Source: Hyphochytrium catenoides
Taxonomy: Eukaryota > Protista > Hyphochytriomycota
NCBI GenBank assembly: GCA_900088475.1
Contig: FLMG01004727.1
Span: forward strand, 1 to 55,486
Direction of reading: 5' to 3'
DNA: 55,486 nt
Part shown: positions 2,627 to 36,453 of the stretch, one piece after another
Position numbering within the stretch: position 1 is the stretch's first letter
Layout of the letters: each line of letters starts with the position of its first letter
The notes under the pieces: generated by a model
Seen by the model: the letters and a program-made list of their open reading frames with translations, nothing else
Told to the model about the DNA's origin: nothing
Databases searched by the model: none
Position numbers and translations under genes: made by a program

Positions 2627-3601
2627 ATGAACGCCCAACTCGCTGGAGCGAATCAGCAAAATGTTCCCGATAATGCGGCTAACCGCAGGGACAAAGAGGA
2701 GGGAGATGGCGGTGGCTCTAAGCGCCGCGGCCGCAGACCAGGCTCCACAAACTATGCCTTCGAGGACCTTGAGCGTAAGATCCTAAGACACCTTCTGAAC
2801 TACCAGCTATAGCTTTGCAGTGCTCACGCTGTATCTAACCGCTTCCCCGTAGGAATGGTCCAGCTCGTAGATGAAATGAAACCAATCTCCCTCCAAAGCT
2901 GGAATGAAGTGGTAGATAGATTTAACAACTGGGCACAGAGTCAGGGCCGTCCTGTCAGGGACGTAGACGCCTTCAAGCGCAAGTTTGAAAAGATTGCAAA
3001 CTCAAAGCTGGAAGCGACAGATCCTGCTGAGAATCGCATCGCCAAGAAAGCAAAGCAGGTCTATCAGCAGATGGGCAACCAGAAGGCAGGACTTGACCCT
3101 GCTGCCACGCCGAAAAAGAAGAAGCTGGCTAAGGGTCTAAAGAAGTCTGTGAAGAAGCTGGGCGCTAACAAGGCTGCTTCTGGTGGTGCACCCAGCTCCA
3201 CCAAGGCAGCTAATGCCGCCGAGCCTAGTGGGCCCGTTGACCCGAATAAGTCAAAGCTCATGCAGTTCTTCCATCAGAATGTGGCGACGACACTGGCAGC
3301 CAATCAAATGAGGACAGAGCAGGAACTTGCCCAGTTCCAAGGCCGGCTGGATCAGCTTTTGAGCAATAATCAGTCACGACTTGAGCATCAGCTGGCAGAG
3401 CTGCGCTTCCAGGTCCAGCAGCAGCATTTGCATACTCAAGTTATTTTGCAGCAGTTGCAGACCATCCATGCTATTATCATGATGAATCGAGAGTCCAATG
3501 CCTACCCTGAGCCCCAAACACACTCGCCTCCCCCTCCACAGCAGCCCCCTGCCAAGAAATCTGGGGAGAAGGGCGCTGGGAAAGGCAAAAAGAAGATGTG
3601 A
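2627..3601 (+). CDS. DUF6818 / Myb-SANT-like DNA-binding protein with Q-rich coiled coil (2 exons; intron 2775-2852)
   Basis: A GT..AG intron joins the two ORFs in frame (EDLE-R-MVQL). The motif GRRPGSTNY...PISLQSWNEVVDRFNNWAQSQGRPVRDVDAFKRKFEKIANSK...TDP...AKKAK fits the DUF6818 pattern. A basic NLS-like stretch (PKKKK) is present. Confidence 0.7.
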
Positions 3602-4152
3602 GTCATTGTCTTTACCTTATGGTGCGCTAGCCTTGATGATAGAGGACTTATAGCGACGGCGCCCTTGTGTTATATGCTGCCCTCCAGGACAAAAGCCGTC
3701 TAGTCTGGTGCCTTTAATTTGCGCAGCGGAGCTAGAGGAGGCTATTGAGACGGACAGCCGGCAGGCTGGCCATTGTACTTTTACGCCCCGCCTGATATCA
3801 CATGCCAGCTCGCATCCCTCTCTACGCTTTGACATTCAGTTCGTTCTGTCCCCTCTTCTTCGCCGGTCCTCCTTATCCTCCTCCTTTTCTTCTCTATCAT
3901 CCCCCACCCCATGCCCGGAGCTCCGTATAATATAGGAGTCATAGAGCCGACTGGGCCTGCAGGTGGACCACCTCCCGCCTAAGCTAATATATTCTCGAGT
4001 TGGAGCAGCCGTCACCCCATCCTAATTCTTGGCTTTACGTGCTGCAAATCTGGATACACCCTTGAAGCTTTCGCCCGACCTCTAGAACAGAATGCTAACC
4101 AGCGCTTTCAATGATCATATTCTGGGTGCACCACTGGGTGGCCCAGCGTCAT

Positions 4153-10656: not shown

Positions 10657-10738
10657 CACTATTGGCACACTCACTTGCATTGTTTTGAGAAAACGAGAAG
10701 CAGGCGCGAGGAGAACGAATGATAACGGTAAAGAGGTG

Positions 10739-11825
10739 CTACTGCCGCCGCTTGGTGCTTTCCTCCCCTTTTGCTACCCTGCCCTTGAGCAGTCGCGGCA
10801 CCATGAAGCCCAGGATGGCGATGGCCACTAGCTGCATGTTCGGTGGAGCGAGGTATTAGAGAGGGGAAAGAGCCGGAAAGGAGAAGGGTAAGGCTGTGTA
10901 ATAGTGGAGCTGGTGGGAGGAGATGAAAGACGGTGAGCTTGGTGGCGCTGGCTAAAACATAGACAGACAGAGAGGAAGGGGAATAGATATTAAGAGACAC
11001 CAGATTGGCCCCGAGACAGGGATAGAAAAGGCAATGAGAGGCAGTAGGACTCACCTGCAGCGTTGTACTTCTATCCATAATCTCACTCTTAGAACGCAGC
11101 TCGCCCAGGATGACTCCGGCTTTACAGCTTAAAAAGTTATACGGCGTGAGCCCCATCATGATAGCCAGCGAGAAGTGTGAGACAGGGATATGGAGATGAG
11201 GGGCCGAGACGTTCATGAACCAGTTTGGAGTGAAAGGGAAGATTCTCATGGACGTCATGTACCAGACTAGATCCCCACGATGAGCGTCCAGCTTGCGACG
11301 AAGCTCTTCCATCTTATCCTCAAAGAAGTGCGTAATGAGGTTATGTCCAAAGAGCTTGGAGAGAAGATAGAGGAAGACGGAGCCCACGGTGTTATAGAGA
11401 AGGCACAGAGGATAGCCCAGCGTCACACCGTACAGAGCGCCACCTAGAAGGTTGAAGAAGATGGTACCGGGAATAGCAAAGGTCTGAAGAAAGAGATAGC
11501 AAGCTGCGTGTCCCACAAAGACCTCCATAGGGTGCCGGGCAGAGTAAGACTCCAAGAACTTGCCCAGCTTCTGCACTTCTTGAAGGTTGGTAGGGAGGAC
11601 AACGGCGTCTCTTTCCACAGAGGAAACGTGCGCGAAGACAAAGTATTTGAGGAAACTCATGAGCCCAACGACTGCACCGAGGAAGAGAAGGAGCACAATG
11701 AACAGATCACGCTTCCAGGACGCCGCATCCTTCACTTTCGCTATAGAAGCGCTGCCTTGTGAGCCTTTGGATGCTGAAGGCCTCTGTCTAACGCTTCCCC
11801 CATTCTTAGTCTTAGAGCTCGCCAT
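10739..11825 (-). CDS. TMEM41: TMEM41 / VTT (DedA, SNARE-associated Golgi) membrane protein; exons 11825-11055, 10831-10739
   Basis: The motifs YLFLQTFAIPGTIFFNLLGGALYG and MRIFPFTPNWFMNVSAP are diagnostic for TMEM41A/B. A GTGAGT...GCAG intron gives the terminal helix LVAIAILGFMVPRLLK. Confidence 0.9.
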
Positions 11826-12213
11826 CCCTGTGCTGTCAGGTGGAAGAGGAGCGGATAACCTCAACAATCTGTGGTACACCAGGGAGTTTAGTAGAGGACA
11901 ATGCAGTTGCGGCGGCTGGGCTCTAGGAAACTGTCGCTTCCCCAGCCTAGAATCCCCTCTGAGCAGCGACACACCACCAAGGTTATCCTTTCTCTTCTTT
12001 CGCCGTGGAGCTAGCACCGCGTAGGATTTGTCCTGCTTGGTCCAGCTTATGAAGTCTCCGGCGGTAAGGGGAGAGAGCCTGCTGGAGCGCCCAAGCTGGT
12101 CAGCCGCGACGGTGATTCGGAAAGGAAGGAAGTCGAGGTGGTGTGAAGCTGGGAGATGCGGCACTGGGATGAGGGTCAAGGTACAGGGTACGAGGAGGAA
12201 GAGGCCGAACTAC

Positions 12214-24721: not shown

Positions 24722-27700
24722 ATGTACGGCGGGGTGGACAAGTACGGCGGCGCGGTAGTGGGCGGGACGGTGGCAGGTGGCGTGGAAGGCGAGACTCTGG
24801 AGGAATGCATGCAGAACTCCAGCGTCGGGGAGACCCTGGTCCTCAAGCAGCTCACAGAGCAGGTTCCACAGCTTTCCCTTTACTCTTTGCTGTTTCCGGA
24901 TCCTCTGACTCTCACCGCCGCTCCAGGGCGAGGAGGTGGCTATACTGCTCCAAGCGGCGCTAGAGCCACGGTACGGCGGTTTGACATGGCAGCCAGTGAG
25001 TACACTGCACAAAGAGGATGGCTTTCTCAGGCTGCTGCTGCGCTGACCCCTTGCGTATACTCTGATGAAAGGTGGAAGACACTGGGACGGCGCTAAGCAC
25101 CGCTGTGGCAATGAGTCAGATGACCTCGATGCTGCACGACCAGGACCGGAACAATAAGTACGAGGAGGCGATACGGAGGACCATCGAGAAGTTCCAGCAG
25201 AGAGAAGGACGGGATCCCGTGGTAAGCTTGCATGTACACTCTGCCCGATCTCAGGCCTTCCTCAGCTCTTACTATGCGATGTTTAGGTGCTCGATATCGG
25301 CACTGGCACGGGCCTCCTGGTAAGCCATCTCGCGAGAGAGCCGGCGGTGTACTTTGTCTCACTTCGCTGTCCCCATTTGTCCGTCCCTGTCTAGGCGATG
25401 ATGGCAGCAAGAAGCGGGGCAGAGAAAGTCTACGGTTGCGAGCTGTTCCCAGCAATGGCTAACATCGCGTCGCACGTCACAAAGGAGAACTTTAAGGATG
25501 GGCGGATCACCATCATCCCTAAGAAATCAACTGACATGACTGTGGGAGAAGGAGGAGATATTCCTCAGCGGGCCGATCTTCTGGTGACAGAGATCTTTGA
25601 CTCTGTGCTTCTGGGAGAAGGAGTCCTCCCGAGCCTGAGGCATGCCTTTGAGTCTCTCCTGGCGCCAGGTGCCAAGGTGGTGCCTCAAAGAGCTCGAATC
25701 TTCGCCCAAGTGATCCAATGCGAGGAGCTTCTGAACTTCTACCGCTCTCCAGGTATGGGACTGAGGGCACATGTCGAACCCTCCTTGCTAAGCACTAAAG
25801 GCTTTCTCACTTTCTGCCCAGGATCCTTGACAACAAATCTCCAGTTCTATCGCAGCGATACAGCTAAGTCCTGCGATGGAGGCGTTGTGCCCCTTCCCCT
25901 GCACTGCCAAGCCCTCTCCAGTCTCCGACCTCTCTCTGACTCGTTCGAAGTGTTCTCCTTTAGCTTTGATTCCTCCGCAATAGACGCAGAGCCTGAGACG
26001 CGAGAGATCCAGGTCTCAATTCAAACTTCAGGGGAGGTTCATGGGCTCTTGCTCTGGTGGGAGCTATACCTCGACGAGACTGTCACCTACTCTACGGCTC
26101 CTGGCAAGGAGAACTGGCAAGACCACTGGACGCAAGTTGTCTATCCTGTGGGGTCTCAAGCCTTTGCTGTACAAGCACGGGATGTCGTCCGTGTCGGCGC
26201 CTCCCGAAGCGACCTGAATGTCTGGTTCCAGCTGAAACCGGAAGCGCCGCAAGAGCTGGCGGAGCAAGAGATAGGAAGATCTAGGAAGATGATGAAACTC
26301 GCCAGTCATGAGCCAGCGCAGTGCATTTGTGGCATTCATGCGCTGCTCAACCATGAGAGGATCCAGTTGCTAAATGACAAGGATTATATAACGGCCTATG
26401 CAAGAGGTGCGCGCCCGCTGTCACTCACTGTGTTGGGCTTTGTGCTTGAGGCCCCTGAAAGCTCAGTCCTATTACTCGTCGTTGTGCAGCTATCAAGAGG
26501 GCAATCGATGAGTCACCTACGCCAGAAGATGTCGCGTGCTTAGACGTTGGCGATGGTGGGCTTTGTGCTCTACTAGCACTGTCGGCTGGCTGTAAGACAG
26601 TGACCACCATTGAGGAGAAGTTCTTCTCAGGCGTCTTGCTGAATCAGATAGCAAAGTACAATGGCCTTGCTGACTACCTCTCTACCCTGCATTCTGGTGA
26701 GAGCCTGCTCTGTATCTAATGTCTAAGTCCCTTCAACTGCCGCTGGGCAATGAACTCCTTTTTTAGGGTCTGATTGACTACCTTGGCTCTGTAGGCACAC
26801 AGGACCTCGAGGTGGCTGACCTACAGGACGAGAAGAAGATTTCTTTGCTACTAGGAGAGCCTTTCTACTATCAAATGCAGAGCTTTCAGGTTTCCTATGA
26901 GTTTTTAAAGATCGTTAGAGTGTCATAGCCTCACACCCGCATCATGCCCTCTCTTCTATTGTAGACGTGGCAAGCGGCCAACTACTGGATCATGCGCTCT
27001 GCGGTACAAGGTAGGAAAGATCCAGCAGGCTGCGAATGGAAGCGCTAGATAGCTCTGTGATAGCACTCTCGGCTAGTCCTTCTCTAACATGTCTCACTAT
27101 TGCGTTTCTCTACTGCCACACGTGACATGGCTTGTGGCTCTGTGTACGGAATGGTTCTCATCGTTCGCTTCCTTCCGGCAATTATTCATAGAACTGTTGG
27201 CACCCGAAGTGAGGGTTATACCATGTCAGGCACGCGTTATGGCTGTTGCTCTGGAGCTGCCAGACCTCTCAAAGAGCTTTGGTGCGGTCGGGGCCGTCAA
27301 TGGTTTCGATCACCACTTTTTAGACGCAGTGCAGGTTGGCAACCCGTGTCCTGATTCCCGCTCCGTCGATAGCTCACAACTTATAAGTAATGTGTCTCAC
27401 ATGTATGCCTGGCACGTAGGCTAACGCAGTTGACAAGGAGTACCCTTTTCCTCTCTGGATGTACGCCAACCGCCTCCTCTCGACACCCTTTGAGATTCTT
27501 AGCTTTGACTATACTGGAGCCGCGCAGACAGTGGAGCGAGAGGGAAGTGTGAGCTTTACTGAGGATGGCACCCTCCACGCTGTGGCTATCTGGGTAGACT
27601 ACCAGCTTGACGAGGTGAACTCTGTCTCTTTGGGCTGGCGAGAAGGTTAGTGGAGCCATTACAAACAAAGATCTCTTGTCTTTGACCCATTCTCTTCATT

Positions 27701-27907: not shown

Positions 27908-29041
27908 TCAGACAAGTCTTAACCATCGGCCCGAAGGTTGAGGCGGCTTCCATTCTTCGCCTGTGGGCAGGATTGGTCGACTCTCGATACCTTCCAGCAC
28001 GAGGCGAACAAAGTCCTCGGTTGCTTCTCGCGCGATAGTCTGCGCTAATGGATCGAGAAACTGGTCTTTCTGCAGGTAGCGGTTAAACGCTTTCAGGTTG
28101 ACTTCTAGCAGCCATGGCGTCCCGTTGGCATCAAAAATAAAGTCATAGCCGCACCAATAGAGGCACTGCGGACGAAGGCTGTGCCGTGTGGCACCATGAG
28201 AACTGACCACAGCGTCGTATATTGCTCGCACGCTATAGCTTCGGAAGCGGCCCTGTGGAAAGAGCGCCGCAATCTCCTCTTCGCTGACATTGTTATATGC
28301 ATAATATTTGCCAAAGTCCGGGTCGTGGATTTGGACTTTCTTGTTGGTAAGGACAGTCTTCTGCGAGCCTAGAGCCACAGCCGCTGTTTTACCTCGAACC
28401 CTGTCAAAGACGAGCGCGTGATCCCGTGTGAGAAGCGCCCAGATACGGACGTCAAATTTGGAAGGACCCTTGGGCAAGAGAAGAGTGGGCGGAATGGCAT
28501 GCTGCACTATAACCACTTTTGTTTCGCTCAGCAGCTTCTGCACGAGGCTGCCAGCCTCAAGCAGCGTCTGCGCATAAAAGACTCCGCAACCGCCTCCTTT
28601 ATTGGGATGCTTCACATAGTAGCCGTACTCGCAGGGACTTAGTTGGTCCTCAAGCGACGTAGCATCTTTGATGCTGGTAGTGATGGGAAAGAATGGGGCA
28701 ATATTTCTGCGACTGCAGTGCCGCCAAAGAAGAGAGTGAAGCTTTGCCTTGTTACCCAGTGAGGGACATATGGGGAACCAGACTAGCGGGTCAAGCGGCG
28801 TACATTCGCTTAGCTGTAGATCAAGTTTCTCTGCAGCTCTGTGGCCCTTATTCAATCGGATGGCCTCTTTACGCGAGACAAGGACGATGACGTGCCTAGT
28901 ATCATGTGTCCCCGACGCCATATCCCCAGTAGCACCGTCAGGTACGTGACAACCATTGCGGACGAATGCTTCCGAGAGTAAATCTCCTGCCGGCAATTGG
29001 TTGTCTATGTCGGAATCAATAACCTTCACCGCTAAAATCAT
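27908..29041 (-). CDS. Tubulin-tyrosine ligase (TTL/TTLL) family ATP-grasp peptide ligase, single exon
   Basis: 377-aa ORF with YYVKHPNKGGGCGVF, IVQHAI.P.LL, KFDVRIWALL, LTN, GYDFIFD and PWLLEVN, the full ordered TTL motif set. Confidence 0.85.
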   Translation of the reverse strand: MILAVKVIDSDIDNQLPAGDLLSEAFVRNGCHVPDGATGDMASGTHDTRHVIVLVSRKEAIRLNKGHRAAEKLDLQLSECTPLDPLVWFPICPSLGNKAKLHSLLWRHCSRRNIAPFFPITTSIKDATSLEDQLSPCEYGYYVKHPNKGGGCGVFYAQTLLEAGSLVQKLLSETKVVIVQHAIPPTLLLPKGPSKFDVRIWALLTRDHALVFDRVRGKTAAVALGSQKTVLTNKKVQIHDPDFGKYYAYNNVSEEEIAALFPQGRFRSYSVRAIYDAVVSSHGATRHSLRPQCLYWCGYDFIFDANGTPWLLEVNLKAFNRYLQKDQFLDPLAQTIAREATEDFVRLVLEGIESRPILPTGEEWKPPQPSGRWLRLV

Positions 29042-29766: not shown

Positions 29767-30178
29767 GCAATCCACTCGGCCCGCCGGCGGCACGACATCG
29801 GTGCGGCATCCTCCGCATGGCCAGACCAGGGACAGGCGAGTCATCGGCCGCGAGAAGTGAAGAAGAAGAAGCGATCCGAGCACGGAAGTGCCGCTCGAAA
29901 ACTTCTACTAGAGATACTCTCGGAGTATTCTTCCTGTTAGATAAAGAAGGCAAAAGGATCATCATCCTCTTGCCGTGCCGAACTATGAGCACCCAGAATT
30001 ACCTCTCGCCCTTCTTCTCATAGATCTTCCTCAATCTGGTGGCAGAGTAAGCAACTGAAGCCGATGGTGAGCCCAGCAAAGCCTTCTCCCATCGGATATG
30101 TGAGGTCAATAATCTGTTGTGAGGAATGAGCCATGTCTTAAACTCACCTCCTTCGAGGTTGGCATCAAACTTGTCAGG

Positions 30179-32690
30179 ATGGTGCGAAGTGCCTATTCCT
30201 GGGTGTACTACGCCTCGACTGCCTTGATACTGGCATCACAGATAGGAGTCCACGGCCTGGAGAAAGATTGTAAGTGGAGTTGTTGCTTCGTATACACCGG
30301 CGCGGTGCAGTGCTTTCCTTTTTCTAAGCTTAGCGATGCTTCCACGGCTCGCTCTTTTTACTTCATCCCTACCACCATCTCTGCACCACAACCGACGGCA
30401 AATGATCACTTACAATTCCTGGTCGATGACAGCGCTCATTTATTCTTGCGAGAAGGCCGAGAAACCAAGTGTCAGCTTTTGCTCCGATGTCTCTTGGCGA
30501 TCGGCCCAAGTTTTCACTGGTCAAAGCCTCGAGCCTCAGGTTCCCATCATCTCCTCCACGATAGATGCCTACGCCAAGCAGCATCATGCCAAACTGGCGG
30601 TGATGACCAACGATCCCGCATGCGTGGATCAGATCAGGAGGTTCACCTGCGCTGATTACTTCCCCCACTGTCCGTATGTGGGCGCAGGGGCTGGCTATCA
30701 GGTTAGACAGCAGCGTTCTTGTTGAGTTGAATACCAGCTCCGCTCCCTTGGCAGTGATGATTCCATAACCTCGGCGTCTTGGCACGCTCCATTTGCTGAC
30801 GACTTATATCTCCTGTCACTGTTTGCAGCTCGTGTGTCGGGTCGAGTGCGACCGTGTAAATGAGCTATGTGGGGATAGCGTGAACGTGAATTGCTCTGCC
30901 TTTCCGTCCACCAATTGCTTCCTCTTTCCGAGGAAGACGTCTTTTCTTCTTCCAGTCAACCGAGGGCCTTATGGGATGCTCCCTCTTCTCTATGTTTGCC
31001 TCTTATTCGCCTGGTGCGTTCTGGTGAGTACATTTTAGAGTTTGTTGTTTAGCGACGCAGCTATACATTCTAAAAGGTCTGCCATCCTTCAGGTCACATG
31101 GTGGGCTTACCACGCCTTTGTTCGCCACGGGAAGTACTCTTTGCTCTTGACACGGGTGCTAACTTCCGTGCCTATCTGCAAGCTAGTCGTTGTGTCAGTG
31201 TGCCTGATCTTTTGGCTGACTTGCCTCAAATGGCAATATTGCAGCTTCTGGCTGGGCGTCGCCTGTATAACTTGCCAGGTGGTCTTTGAGGCCTCAGTCT
31301 ACTTCAGGTGGGTGGAGTTGGCTTAGGTTCATCTCTCATAGTCTTCCCAGATGTTGACACTCGACTTTCAGCATGCTTGTCATAGGCAAAGGATGGGGAA
31401 TCACGGTCGACGGCTTTGACAAGCGGGAATGGCGGGATATTGTCCTTATAATGTAAGCGATGACGAGTTGTCTATCCGTTTTGATACGAGGAAGAGGGAA
31501 GAACAATAACTAGAATGGGGTTGCTGCCGTCACTAAGATGGCAAGGAAGGAAAGAAGGACTATCATATCCATACAGCTAAAATAATTCTCTTCTTAGATT
31601 CTCTGCTAACCCGTGTTCTCATGGAACAGATCTCTCTTTTATTTATTCACCACGGGGCTGCTAACTCTCCGTCGGACGGGCATGGATCAGGAACAGTATT
31701 GGCTCCTGACCTCCGTTGCCTATTCTCTGATCTACTTGCTGATAGCGTACGAGACGTGCAGGAATCTCTACATACTGCGCCTTCAGGTGGGCTCATTGAT
31801 CGCCTATATCATCTTCCTTACTGAGTGCTTCCGCGGCCTGTACAGGTATTTCTGGCGGAGGGAGGAGCCTCTCCGGCAATACTCAGCGCGATCAGAGCCA
31901 AGTATTATATGTTAACATCCTTTCTCCTGTTCGTCGGCCTCTACGGGATAGTGGAGGTCGTTTCCAATACTCTCCAAGTCCACTATCCAAGCCTCTGGGT
32001 GTCTCTCGTCTTTCGAGAGCTGCTGGAAGTGATCGTCTTTACGTCAATTGGCTACGTCTTCCGGCCGGCAGAGTATAATATATTCTTCTATATGGTGCCG
32101 GTCAGTGCTTTGTCCTCCAACTATCTCGTAGCATCCTAAACAGTTTATGCTAATCTCCCTCCTTACATTGCGCGCTGATGCAGCTAACGACACCCGGAGG
32201 ACGAAGGGTGCCACCATTTTTCACGGTGGAGCAGCAACCGAGTTCAGTCCCTGTTGATAAGCTCAGCTTGAAAGCCTCCAAGAAACCCAAGCAGGAAAGG
32301 CGCGCTGTGGTGGTTGTCCAGCACCCTGATGGTGAATGTTCCATCGGCGCCGCTCATTGTATGTTAAGGGCTCCCGTCACCCTACGCCCGCTGTGGGGCT
32401 TTCGCAGCCGGCGGAACAACAAGACGATGGCAGAGGATCGTTTGTCTCTGTCTTCATCATCCACAACTGACAGTCCAGAGGCGCACACGACCTCTGCACT
32501 TCTACGACGGACGCCTCCAGAGTTTCAGGAAGCCACCCCAAGGGACAATGCTGAAGGTCCACCCGACCTAGAGTTCACTCCAGATCAGTCTCCCTCTCTA
32601 GCACCAGATGAGGATGAAGCCCAGGGCCTGTTGCTTCTTTCACATCCACGAGGGACAGCAGACGGGATAGCTACACCCATTGTCTCTTAG
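30179..32690 (+). CDS. Signal peptide + Frizzled-type cysteine-rich domain + 7TM region of GPR107/GPR108/TMEM87 (GOST, lung-7TM) type, multi-exon
   Basis: Ten-cysteine Fz pattern (YSCEK, FCSD, PACVDQIRRFTCADYFPHC, VCRVECDRVNELC, VNCSAFPSTNC). It is followed by seven hydrophobic segments with LVIGKGWGIT, RAKYYML and IGYVFRP motifs, then a Ser/Pro/acidic tail. Confidence 0.75.
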
Positions 32691-33499
32691 CATCCTATGA
32701 GCGTAGCTCAGTAATATCAGATCGTCCAGTACACCTTCCCATTTGCAAAGCTGACTTTTGCTGTTATGCTAGACTCTCGCTTGATCCTCTACTTCACGCG
32801 TCCACTAGATGGCTGTCGCTCCAACTTACGGTCCTTTGCTGATGGCCATAGTAATTATACCGCGGCTTTTCGATCTCAGACCTGTCAGGTAGCGCAACCC
32901 ATCAGGAGACCACCGCCAGCAATATCGTTGCTTCTGCGTCAGTGCCGGGTGGGGCTGCTGGCGAAGGCAATAAGGTTCACAGGCAGCAGGGAAGAAGCAG
33001 GGAAGACGTTGTGACGGGAAAGCAGAGGGTGACAGACAGGATGAGGCTTAGAACCTTGCTTGGATCTGGGATGGGACATGGGGCATCATGAGTTTCAAAT
33101 GGTTCCGAAGATATTCCATCGTTCTAGTAAAGGGTGAGCCCAGATGATGTGATCTGTGCAATAGATTCGCCGATTGATCAGTATGAGAGGGCTTGACCAG
33201 TGAGGGCTAGGATGTACTCGGCTGAAGAGAAAGGAGGATGGATGCCTTGGGCGCGGCCTCTACCCGCGACAGCTACCCAGCAGCAACAGCTGAAATTGGT
33301 TTTGTGCTCTCTTCAGGTGCAGAGGGTCAAGGTCAAAAATACCTGGTTGTATGCACTGCTTGAGGGGCTTCACAGGGCGACCTTGACGGTGGGAATGAGG
33401 CTTAGGCTTGATAGATACTAGAGGACGGTCCTCTGGGTGCGCGGTAGTGAGGACGAGGGCAGCTTCATCATTCTGCTGCTGAGGATTCAAGCCTCACGC

Positions 33500-35681: not shown

Positions 35682-36453
35682 TTAGAGTCCATAAAGAACC
35701 GCCAATACGACCAGAGCTGTAGCTGGTGACGGTAAGAAGTCCTTAAGGCCCTCTTTCCACAAATTGGAGTCATGGTACAGGAAGTCCATGCTGGACCTTA
35801 GAGAAGGATGAAGCAGGGAGCCATAGTTCTCAAATTGGAACATCACCACCGCCCAAGTGAGCGTGGCAAGAGCCGGATACACCTTGCTAAAATTCATCGA
35901 AGAGAAAGGGGAGAGCCCATCTGCTGAGAGCTTTCTGAACTGAGCTATGATGATCCTGGAAAGCAGGTACATCACGATTTGGTAGTTCACTGAGGAGTAC
36001 TTGGACCATACTAGATAGCCGCCTACGCCTCCTGCCACTAGTGCATGCCATGGCGCTGCAGGTCTACCATTGGATTTGGCAAACGATCCCGTGATGGCGC
36101 TCTGAAAGAGCCGCAAAGCCTCCAACGATGCCTTGTACGTACCCACAAACATGGCTAGGTTCTTGGTGTGCTCATAAGTCAGCATTAGAACCGCACGTAT
36201 CTTGTCCCGCAGTTTACCGGGGCGGAACAAAAAAGTCATGACAAAAGCTGTAGATGGCAAAACAGAGAGCGGGGCATGATGGTCAGAGTTAGCAGCAACC
36301 CTTGAGCATTCTATCTGTGCCGTTTTTACCATGAGGAAGACGAATCTTCGTTCCATAGTAGGCTCCATTTCTGATGCCGCGGAGGATGTAGAGGAGGCTG
36401 CTGTATTGAGCTGAATCAGCTCTCAATAACCAGGAATCTACGACCCCCGCCAT
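35682..36453 (-). CDS. PXMP4: Peroxisomal membrane protein 4 (PMP24, Tim17 family); exons 36453-36330, 36247-35682
   Basis: Spliced RGIRNGAYYGTKIRLPH|AFVMTFLF, then HTKNLAMFV, VNYQIVMYLLSR and LRSSMDFLYHDS, all PXMP4 signatures. Confidence 0.93.

Follow-up and report, generated by a model that had tools for sequence, protein, structure and literature searches.

A predicted fusion of a Frizzled-type cysteine-rich domain with a GOST-type seven-helix membrane body in Hyphochytrium catenoides

GOST proteins are located in the Golgi and endosomes and carry a GOLD domain above a seven-transmembrane (7TM) cavity with openings towards both the lumen and the outer membrane leaflet (PMC9711517, PMC11605061, PMC12716839); all are described as GOLD carriers (PMC12716839, PMC9711517, PMC11605061). 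In Wntless, this cavity holds the palmitoleate of Wnt (PMC9711517, PMC11605061). Here we describe a gene in a 55,486-nucleotide (nt) stretch of the Hyphochytrium catenoides genome (contig FLMG01004727.1, positions 1 to 55,486; hereafter the window), the predicted product of which joins a Frizzled-type cysteine-rich domain (CRD) to a GOST-type 7TM body. An earlier reading of the window, made from the sequence without database searches (the sequence-only reading), had proposed this combination at positions 30179-32690. These coordinates are correct, with the first in-frame ATG at 30179 and the stop codon at 32688-32690. We refer to the protein and its relatives as the CRD-GOST family.

Set against the definition of the GOST superfamily (Hoel et al. 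2022), CRD-GOST proteins have the 7TM homology and lack the luminal GOLD domain before the first transmembrane (TM) helix. Compared with TMEM87A/B and GPR107/108 (LUSTR; PF06814, GOST_TM), the seven-helix domain is structurally homologous to TMEM87A, as modeled for a relative (P0002), whereas the GOLD beta-sandwich is replaced by a helical ten-cysteine CRD. Sequence identity to these proteins is about 15-16%, most CRD-GOST members fall below the Pfam cut-off, and TM3 carries a KGW motif where the TMEM87/GPR107-type protein of the same genome has GLGYG. The body shares the motif I-G-K-G-W-x-I with GPR180/TMEM145 proteins (PF10192), which also provide its commonest sub-threshold Pfam match, but it is not accompanied by a GOLD domain and differs from them at the end of TM7 and in the tail. 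Wntless (WLS/Evi) belongs to the same superfamily. Compared with the CRDs of MuSK, Ror2/Nrk, Frizzled, sFRP, and Smoothened, the CRD described here sits on a GOST body and not on a kinase or a class F 7TM domain, and it is further set apart by a stretch of 46-62 residues between the second and third cysteines across the family.

Frizzled-type ectodomain and GOST-type membrane body

The ectodomain of the window protein is a Frizzled-type CRD. A hydrophobic, signal-like stretch (residues 1-25) is followed by ten cysteines from C36 to C150, with spacings of 10, 46, 8, 6, 12, 3, 6, 7, and 7, which bears out the complete ten-cysteine Fz domain claimed by the sequence-only reading. The window protein and the family have in common the cysteine core x8, x6, x12-16, x3, x5-6, which is the Fz signature, with the canonical spacing seen in the FZD8 CRD. 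The Pfam Fz model (PF01392) matches exon 2 alone with an expectation value (E) of 0.003 (18.5 bits) and 20 of the 24 family members (best E 1.8e-7), and it appears in the precomputed annotation of the protein collection for several of them. When a profile built from the CRDs of the family only (A2) was searched against all PDB sequences, Fz-type CRDs made up the top 35 of 36 matches, at marginal E values (0.011 upward). The AlphaFold model of the P0002 CRD (predicted local distance difference test score, pLDDT, 85.9; predicted template modeling score, pTM, 0.81) has the helical CRD fold of FZD, sFRP, MuSK, Ror, and SMO, and the best 50 Foldseek rows obtained with it are all Fz-type CRDs. Among these the CRD is nearest to those of MuSK and Ror, not to those of FZD or SMO.

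Seven TM segments are predicted by hydropathy at residues 169-408, in agreement with the seven-helix body of the sequence-only reading. The linker between the CRD and TM1 is short (about 15 residues) and ends in G-P-Y. That the body is of GOST type and not of class F is supported by structure and by domain profiles. With a model of P0002 residues 1-440 (pLDDT 74 overall, 80-94 in the helices), the top four PDB matches in Foldseek are all human TMEM87A (E 3e-5 to 3e-4); the AlphaFold and Foldseek check that had been suggested, run on this relative, thus leads from the CRD to Fz-type CRDs and from the body to TMEM87A. The nearest ESM Atlas clusters carry GOST_TM. A member from an Ectocarpus assembly (P0055) exceeds the Pfam GOST_TM cut-off (28.7 versus 25.2 bits, profile positions 9-243 of 246), and two further members align over the whole PF06814 profile at E 0.021-0.065, below the cut-off. 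GPR180-TMEM145_TM (PF10192) is matched by 6 of the 24 members (best E 4.3e-5), the listed scores of 16.6-17.9 bits being sub-threshold. The single TM exons of the window, which are too short for such searches, gave no Pfam match to GOST_TM or GPR180-TMEM145_TM. Searches of PDB sequences with the family profile or with P0055 did not reach TMEM87A; the GOST link is structural plus Pfam. The sequence-only reading had allowed that the TM region might score best to class F receptors; in addition to the TMEM87A matches, none of the 24 members matches the Frizzled TM model (PF01534), and neither the window protein nor the family has a KTxxxW motif after TM7.

The CRD stands in the place of GOLD, as had been proposed. 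None of the 24 members has a Pfam match to GOLD/EMP24, and in the P0002 models the helical CRD takes up the whole segment of roughly 140 residues that separates TM1 from the signal peptide, the place of GOLD. A feature search of the ESM Atlas returned no large cluster with both Fz and GOST_TM, its best scores (0.79-0.81) being at noise level. Two motifs had been named as marks of GPR107/108-type proteins. GYVFRP is present literally; LIGKGW is not, the window reading L-V-I-G-K-G-W (Table 1). KGW is held in common with a GPR180/TMEM145-type paralogue in this genome, whereas the TMEM87/GPR107-type paralogue has GLGYG.

The fusion of the CRD to the 7TM body is confirmed by comparison with relatives, all full-length ones having the same colinear CRD-7TM architecture. 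One NCBI assembly contig (L017) encodes the whole CRD and 7TM protein in a single 586-codon frame. On a contig of the Ectocarpus fasciculatus assembly (GCA_964200205.2, CAXNAF020000522.1; L023, 9527-11164), the frame is unbroken through CRD, 7TM, and tail and is 67.6% identical to residues 19-576 of the member P0007. Because these two contigs hold both parts in an uninterrupted frame, the fusion is independent of the splice sites in the window. Within the window, exons 3 and 4 each encode a part of TM1, and exon 3 holds the last part of the CRD as well; the CRD and 7TM parts are therefore not two genes. On this ground and on that of the colinear relatives, we reject a two-gene reading. The concern of the sequence-only reading that the CRD and 7TM exons might belong to separate transcripts is countered by the relatives, in which both parts lie in one protein. 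In a metagenomic contig of 415,910 bp (ENA ERZ25071330; L018), an exon for the first half of the CRD (2442-2681) lies about 180 nt upstream of a 7TM gene (2860-4062) on the same strand.

Some existing annotations of family members are shorter than the genes. The Ectocarpus fasciculatus entry (CAM9388168.1, 264 amino acids, annotated as "partial") under-calls its gene and covers the 7TM part only, and the annotated gene on the metagenomic contig (406 amino acids) is a mis-called member without its CRD. The Ectocarpus fasciculatus contig may stem from an associated protist, since an intron-less gene is unusual in a brown alga.

Gene structure and family distribution

Reading the three frames of 30100-32750 gave a gene of eight exons with a product of 589 amino acids (Table 1). 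All seven introns are of the GT..AG type and 59-177 nt long, and the spliced frame is open through 589 codons. A family profile (A1) built from 24 relatives, with the window sequence left out, was searched against the whole genome (61.0 Mb, 4,759 contigs). It matched six window exons (2 to 7) in order on the plus strand (E 2.1e-15 to 1.8e-3), and, as the profile is independent of the window, this match is not due to chance. No second match was found elsewhere in the 61-Mb genome, so the gene is single-copy there. The spliced protein, a local assembly, was compared by BLASTP, MAFFT, and a tree with relatives already fetched, while the family, fold, and database comparisons used single exons or natural relatives as queries. 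The spliced model is colinear with P0002 over residues 30-476 (E 5e-74, 29% identity).

The splice structure rests on homology, which thins out at both ends of the gene. The ATG of exon 1 is the first after an in-frame stop, a GTAAGT donor follows at 30270, and splicing to 30433 restores the frame; the exon is short and variable and lies outside the reach of homology support. Of the signal peptide claimed by the sequence-only reading, the hydrophobic stretch therein stands, in an exon without such support. An ATG at 30336, within intron 1, may be an alternative start with a mildly hydrophobic N-terminus. A CTAAC branch-point-like site is found upstream of the exon 6 acceptor. The frame of exon 8 has homology support to about 32355 and none in its last third. 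GTATGT at 32359-32364 may be an additional donor, with an acceptor-like ...TTTCGCAG about 50 nt further on; a putative short intron from this donor would leave the protein with a frameshifted and shorter tail.

Table 1 Exons of the CRD-GOST gene (window positions) and GOST-type genes on other contigs of the same genome
Feature	Position	Strand	Content	Match
Exon 1	30179-30269	+	Start codon and signal-peptide-like N-terminus, residues 1-30; ends in phase 1	
Exon 2	30433-30701	+	CRD first half, Cys1-Cys5 (C36 at 30447)	Pfam Fz, E 0.003; family profile 12-106, E 1.4e-9
Exon 3	30829-31023	+	CRD second half, Cys6-Cys10 (C150 at 30916-30918); GPY linker; TM1 start	Family profile 113-185, E 4.0e-12
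Exon 4	31093-31307	+	TM1 end; TM2; extracellular loop 1 with conserved W-x-C-S-F-W block; TM3 start	Family profile 176-245, E 2.9e-13
Exon 5	31372-31452	+	TM3 end with VIGKGW (31379-31396); intracellular loop 2; TM4 start	Family profile 249-285, E 1.8e-4
Exon 6	31630-31786	+	TM4 and TM5	Family profile 276-331, E 1.8e-3
Exon 7	31846-32100	+	Intracellular loop 3; TM6; TM7; GYVFRP (32050-32067)	Family profile 327-415, E 2.1e-15
Exon 8	32184-32690	+	Cytosolic tail; HPDG motif (32304-32354); ExxxLL (32616-32633); stop codon	
GPR180/TMEM145-type gene	C4646:5357-6049	-		
GPR180/TMEM145-type gene	C3571:46222-47174	+		
GOST_TM-type gene (at least two in the genome)	C1661:36097-36465	-		
GOST_TM-type gene (at least two in the genome)	C1627:4013-4978	+		

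Judged by its sequence, the window gene is a divergent member of a small, unnamed, and unstudied stramenopile family of about 20-30 clusters. With exon 7 as the query, a phmmer search of the whole library gave just 16 proteins; among them are several of 505-586 amino acids in which the match lies at an equivalent position. Word-indexed searches of 5.8 billion proteins returned 16 clusters with P0002 and 21 with the A1 profile, and none of these clusters bears a functional name, the entries being called "hypothetical" or "unnamed protein product". With about 21 clusters in such a collection, the architecture is not the catalogued, widespread family that the sequence-only reading had considered as a counter-explanation. 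A literature search, which did not extend to the InterPro architecture tables, found no description of a CRD-GOST protein. Taxon labels are available for three members only, from Paraphysomonas (MMETSP1103), Mallomonas annulata (EukProt), and the Ectocarpus fasciculatus assembly, all ochrophyte stramenopiles; the other members come from metagenomes or transcriptome assemblies. No oomycete-named member turned up in the word-indexed searches, but such a missing match does not prove that oomycetes lack the family. Of all members, the window protein diverges furthest, with 27-31% identity to the full-length members, which are themselves about 37-53% identical to P0002. Of the 72 family positions with at least 90% conservation, it retains 50.

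Proposed function and alternatives

On balance, we favor a cycling receptor for cargo or lipid as the most likely function of the family. The sequence-only reading had suggested a lipid or lipoprotein receptor or a trafficking chaperone, which is a putative role likewise. The protein would be a type-I-oriented multi-pass protein. From the N-terminus on, it would consist of a cleavable signal peptide, a disulfide-rich CRD exposed to the lumen or the outside, the GOST-type seven-helix body about 15 residues later, and a cytosolic tail that carries signals for adaptor sorting. It would cycle, as other GOST proteins do, between the Golgi or trans-Golgi network (TGN), endosomes, and the surface. 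Of a ligand that is hydrophobic or modified with lipid, the CRD, in the stead of GOLD, would recognize the exposed or soluble part and the lipid-exposed 7TM cavity would accept the membrane-embedded part. AP adaptors for sorting would be recruited by an acidic dileucine in the tail. Wntless, whose cavity holds the Wnt palmitoleate and which alone among GOST proteins has a known cargo, serves as the functional template for this mechanism (PMC9711517). The class of ligand, the localization, and the hand-off from CRD to cavity are what we infer by analogy; the analysis itself shows the homology-based gene model, the assignment of the two domains, the lack of GOLD, and the conservation of the tail motifs.

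The tail extends for about 170 residues after TM7. Three motifs recur in the tails of the family: R-P-I-P-I-I-E, the acidic dileucine E-x-E-L-x-P-L-L, and K-M-V-x-V-R-N-P-D-x5-G-x-S. The window protein keeps the third, as A-V-V-V-V-Q-H-P-D-G-E-C-S-I-G-A-A; it is degenerate at the family dileucine site and has a canonical ExxxLL nearer the C-terminus (residues 566-571). Motifs of the form [DE]xxxL[LI] bind AP adaptor complexes, and the dileucine motifs fit a putative cycling between TGN, endosomes, and the surface. We know of no function for the strand-like motifs R-P-I-P-I-I-E and K-M-V-x-V-R-N-P-D-x5-G-x-S.

Several observations weigh against a cargo or lipid receptor. Both structure models are of P0002, which is 29% identical to the window protein, and the Pfam Fz scores listed per member (15.6-30.1 bits) are all below the gathering cut-off of 32.1 bits. 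In the family tree the window protein is on a very long branch, and its sequence departs from the family at 22 of the 72 positions with at least 90% conservation, among them the R of KGWSITR and the SP of SPFFF, so that its function may have drifted. The closest CRDs, those of MuSK and ROR2, are not clear lipid binders, and some MuSK/Ror-type CRDs have no open lipid groove. Furthermore, Wntless is the sole GOST protein with proven cargo (PMC9711517).

Frizzled and Smoothened have the same arrangement of a CRD, a short linker, and a 7TM domain, receptor ectodomains (MuSK, Ror, and FZD) share the CRD fold, and the long, conserved cytosolic tail could dock signaling partners. These features would suit a cell-surface sensor, with a sterol, fatty acid, glycan, or protein as the extracellular ligand of the CRD and with signaling by the 7TM body in the manner of a G-protein-coupled receptor, through G proteins or other partners. 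However, the 7TM body is of GOST type and not class F, the Dishevelled motif KTxxxW is missing after TM7, and the tail has dileucine signals of the sorting type. G-protein signaling has been shown for no protein of the GOST superfamily, and in TMEM87A the G-protein site is blocked by helix 8 (PMC9711517, PMC11605061). We regard such a sensor as unlikely. A true but divergent class F receptor is scarcely credible: class F receptors do have a 7TM domain after a CRD, and Frizzled homologues with Fz domains have been reported in fungi and amoebozoans (PMC12716839), but the family was rejected as class F on the missing PF01534 matches and the missing KTxxxW motif. An ion-conducting or channel-regulating protein is a more doubtful proposal than a sensor. 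The body would then resemble the proposed cation or mechanosensitive channel TMEM87A, with the CRD as a module for gating or assembly comparable to the Mid1/FAM155A CRD for NALCN/Cch1; against this, no channel activity was seen with purified TMEM87A, whose cavity is closed off towards the cytoplasm (PMC9711517), and the sequence contains no pointer to a pore.

It is also very improbable that the gene model is an artefact, with CRD and 7TM exons in two transcripts, or that the gene is a decaying one with frames open by chance. Such readings would agree with the long branch and its 22 changed positions out of 72, with splice sites placed by homology, and with the lack of support for exon 1 and for the 3' part of exon 8. 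However, the seven GT..AG introns join exons into an open frame of 589 codons, all ten CRD cysteines and the W, KGW, and FRP landmarks are kept, TM1 is shared between exons 3 and 4, and the colinear architecture recurs in all full-length relatives, including those with uninterrupted frames.

A bolder form of the cycling receptor, which we consider distinctly unlikely, would be a self-contained shuttle for lipids or lipoproteins. A Wntless-like GOST cavity would hold an acyl or sterol group in the membrane and the Frizzled-type CRD would take it up in solution. The CRD would then stand in for GOLD functionally, and this way of handling lipid with GOST body and CRD would be older than Wnt signaling and occur outside animals. 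If this were true, one chain would join two halves that are kept apart for Wnt in animals. We know of no Wnt or Hedgehog ligands for the stramenopile carriers of this CRD. If the CRD binds lipid, the family would provide a simple model for the hand-off of lipid from a CRD to a GOST cavity.

GOLD has here been swapped in nature for a well-understood ligand-binding module, and its replacement by a CRD implies that the GOST 7TM body works with another ectodomain. CRD-GOST proteins therefore offer a handle on the role of the ectodomain, that is, on the putative capture of cargo above a lipid-exposed cavity. They also extend the partners of Fz-type CRDs past class F receptors, kinases, and secreted proteins.

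Related genes in the genome and neighboring reading frames

The genome also contains presumably ordinary GOST genes of the GPR180/TMEM145 and GOST_TM types (Table 1), so the CRD form adds to the standard set and does not replace it. The gene on contig C4646 has I-G-K-G-W-x-I at the end of TM3, like the CRD-GOST family, and the gene on C1627 has GLGYG at the KGW position; for this reason, the TM3 motif points to the GPR180/TMEM145 side of the GOST superfamily. Alignment of the family with the C4646 open reading frame (ORF) by hhalign covered the KGW block in 39 columns only (78.6%), too weak for a subfamily call. Exon 7 searched against its own genome gave one match, on contig C2989 (E 0.63), which was dismissed.

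A second CRD carrier was found on contig C4433 (571-1704, minus strand; locus L021), where an ORF of 377 amino acids combines a signal peptide, an Fz-like CRD, and a multi-pass body (A2 profile, E 6.7e-6). Its CRD aligns with that of the family over 66 columns (hhalign probability 95.4%, E 2e-8), and the two have in common an F-C-x4-W start and a G-P just ahead of the first TM helix. Taken with the CRD-GOST fusion, this suggests that a single juxtamembrane CRD module has been reused on different membrane bodies in this lineage, and that stramenopiles employ one such module in more than one kind of membrane machinery.

Further ORFs of the window match known families. Upstream of the CRD-GOST gene and divergent to it is a tubulin-tyrosine-ligase-family ORF (27908-29041, minus strand; Pfam TTL, E 1.6e-10). 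The C-terminal part of a PRMT-type arginine methyltransferase is encoded at 25398-26543 on the plus strand (E 4.9e-9) and a VTT-domain membrane protein at 10671-12179 on the minus strand (E 7.4e-12), and an ORF at 35682-36368 (minus strand) has a weak match to the Tim17 family (E 7e-4).

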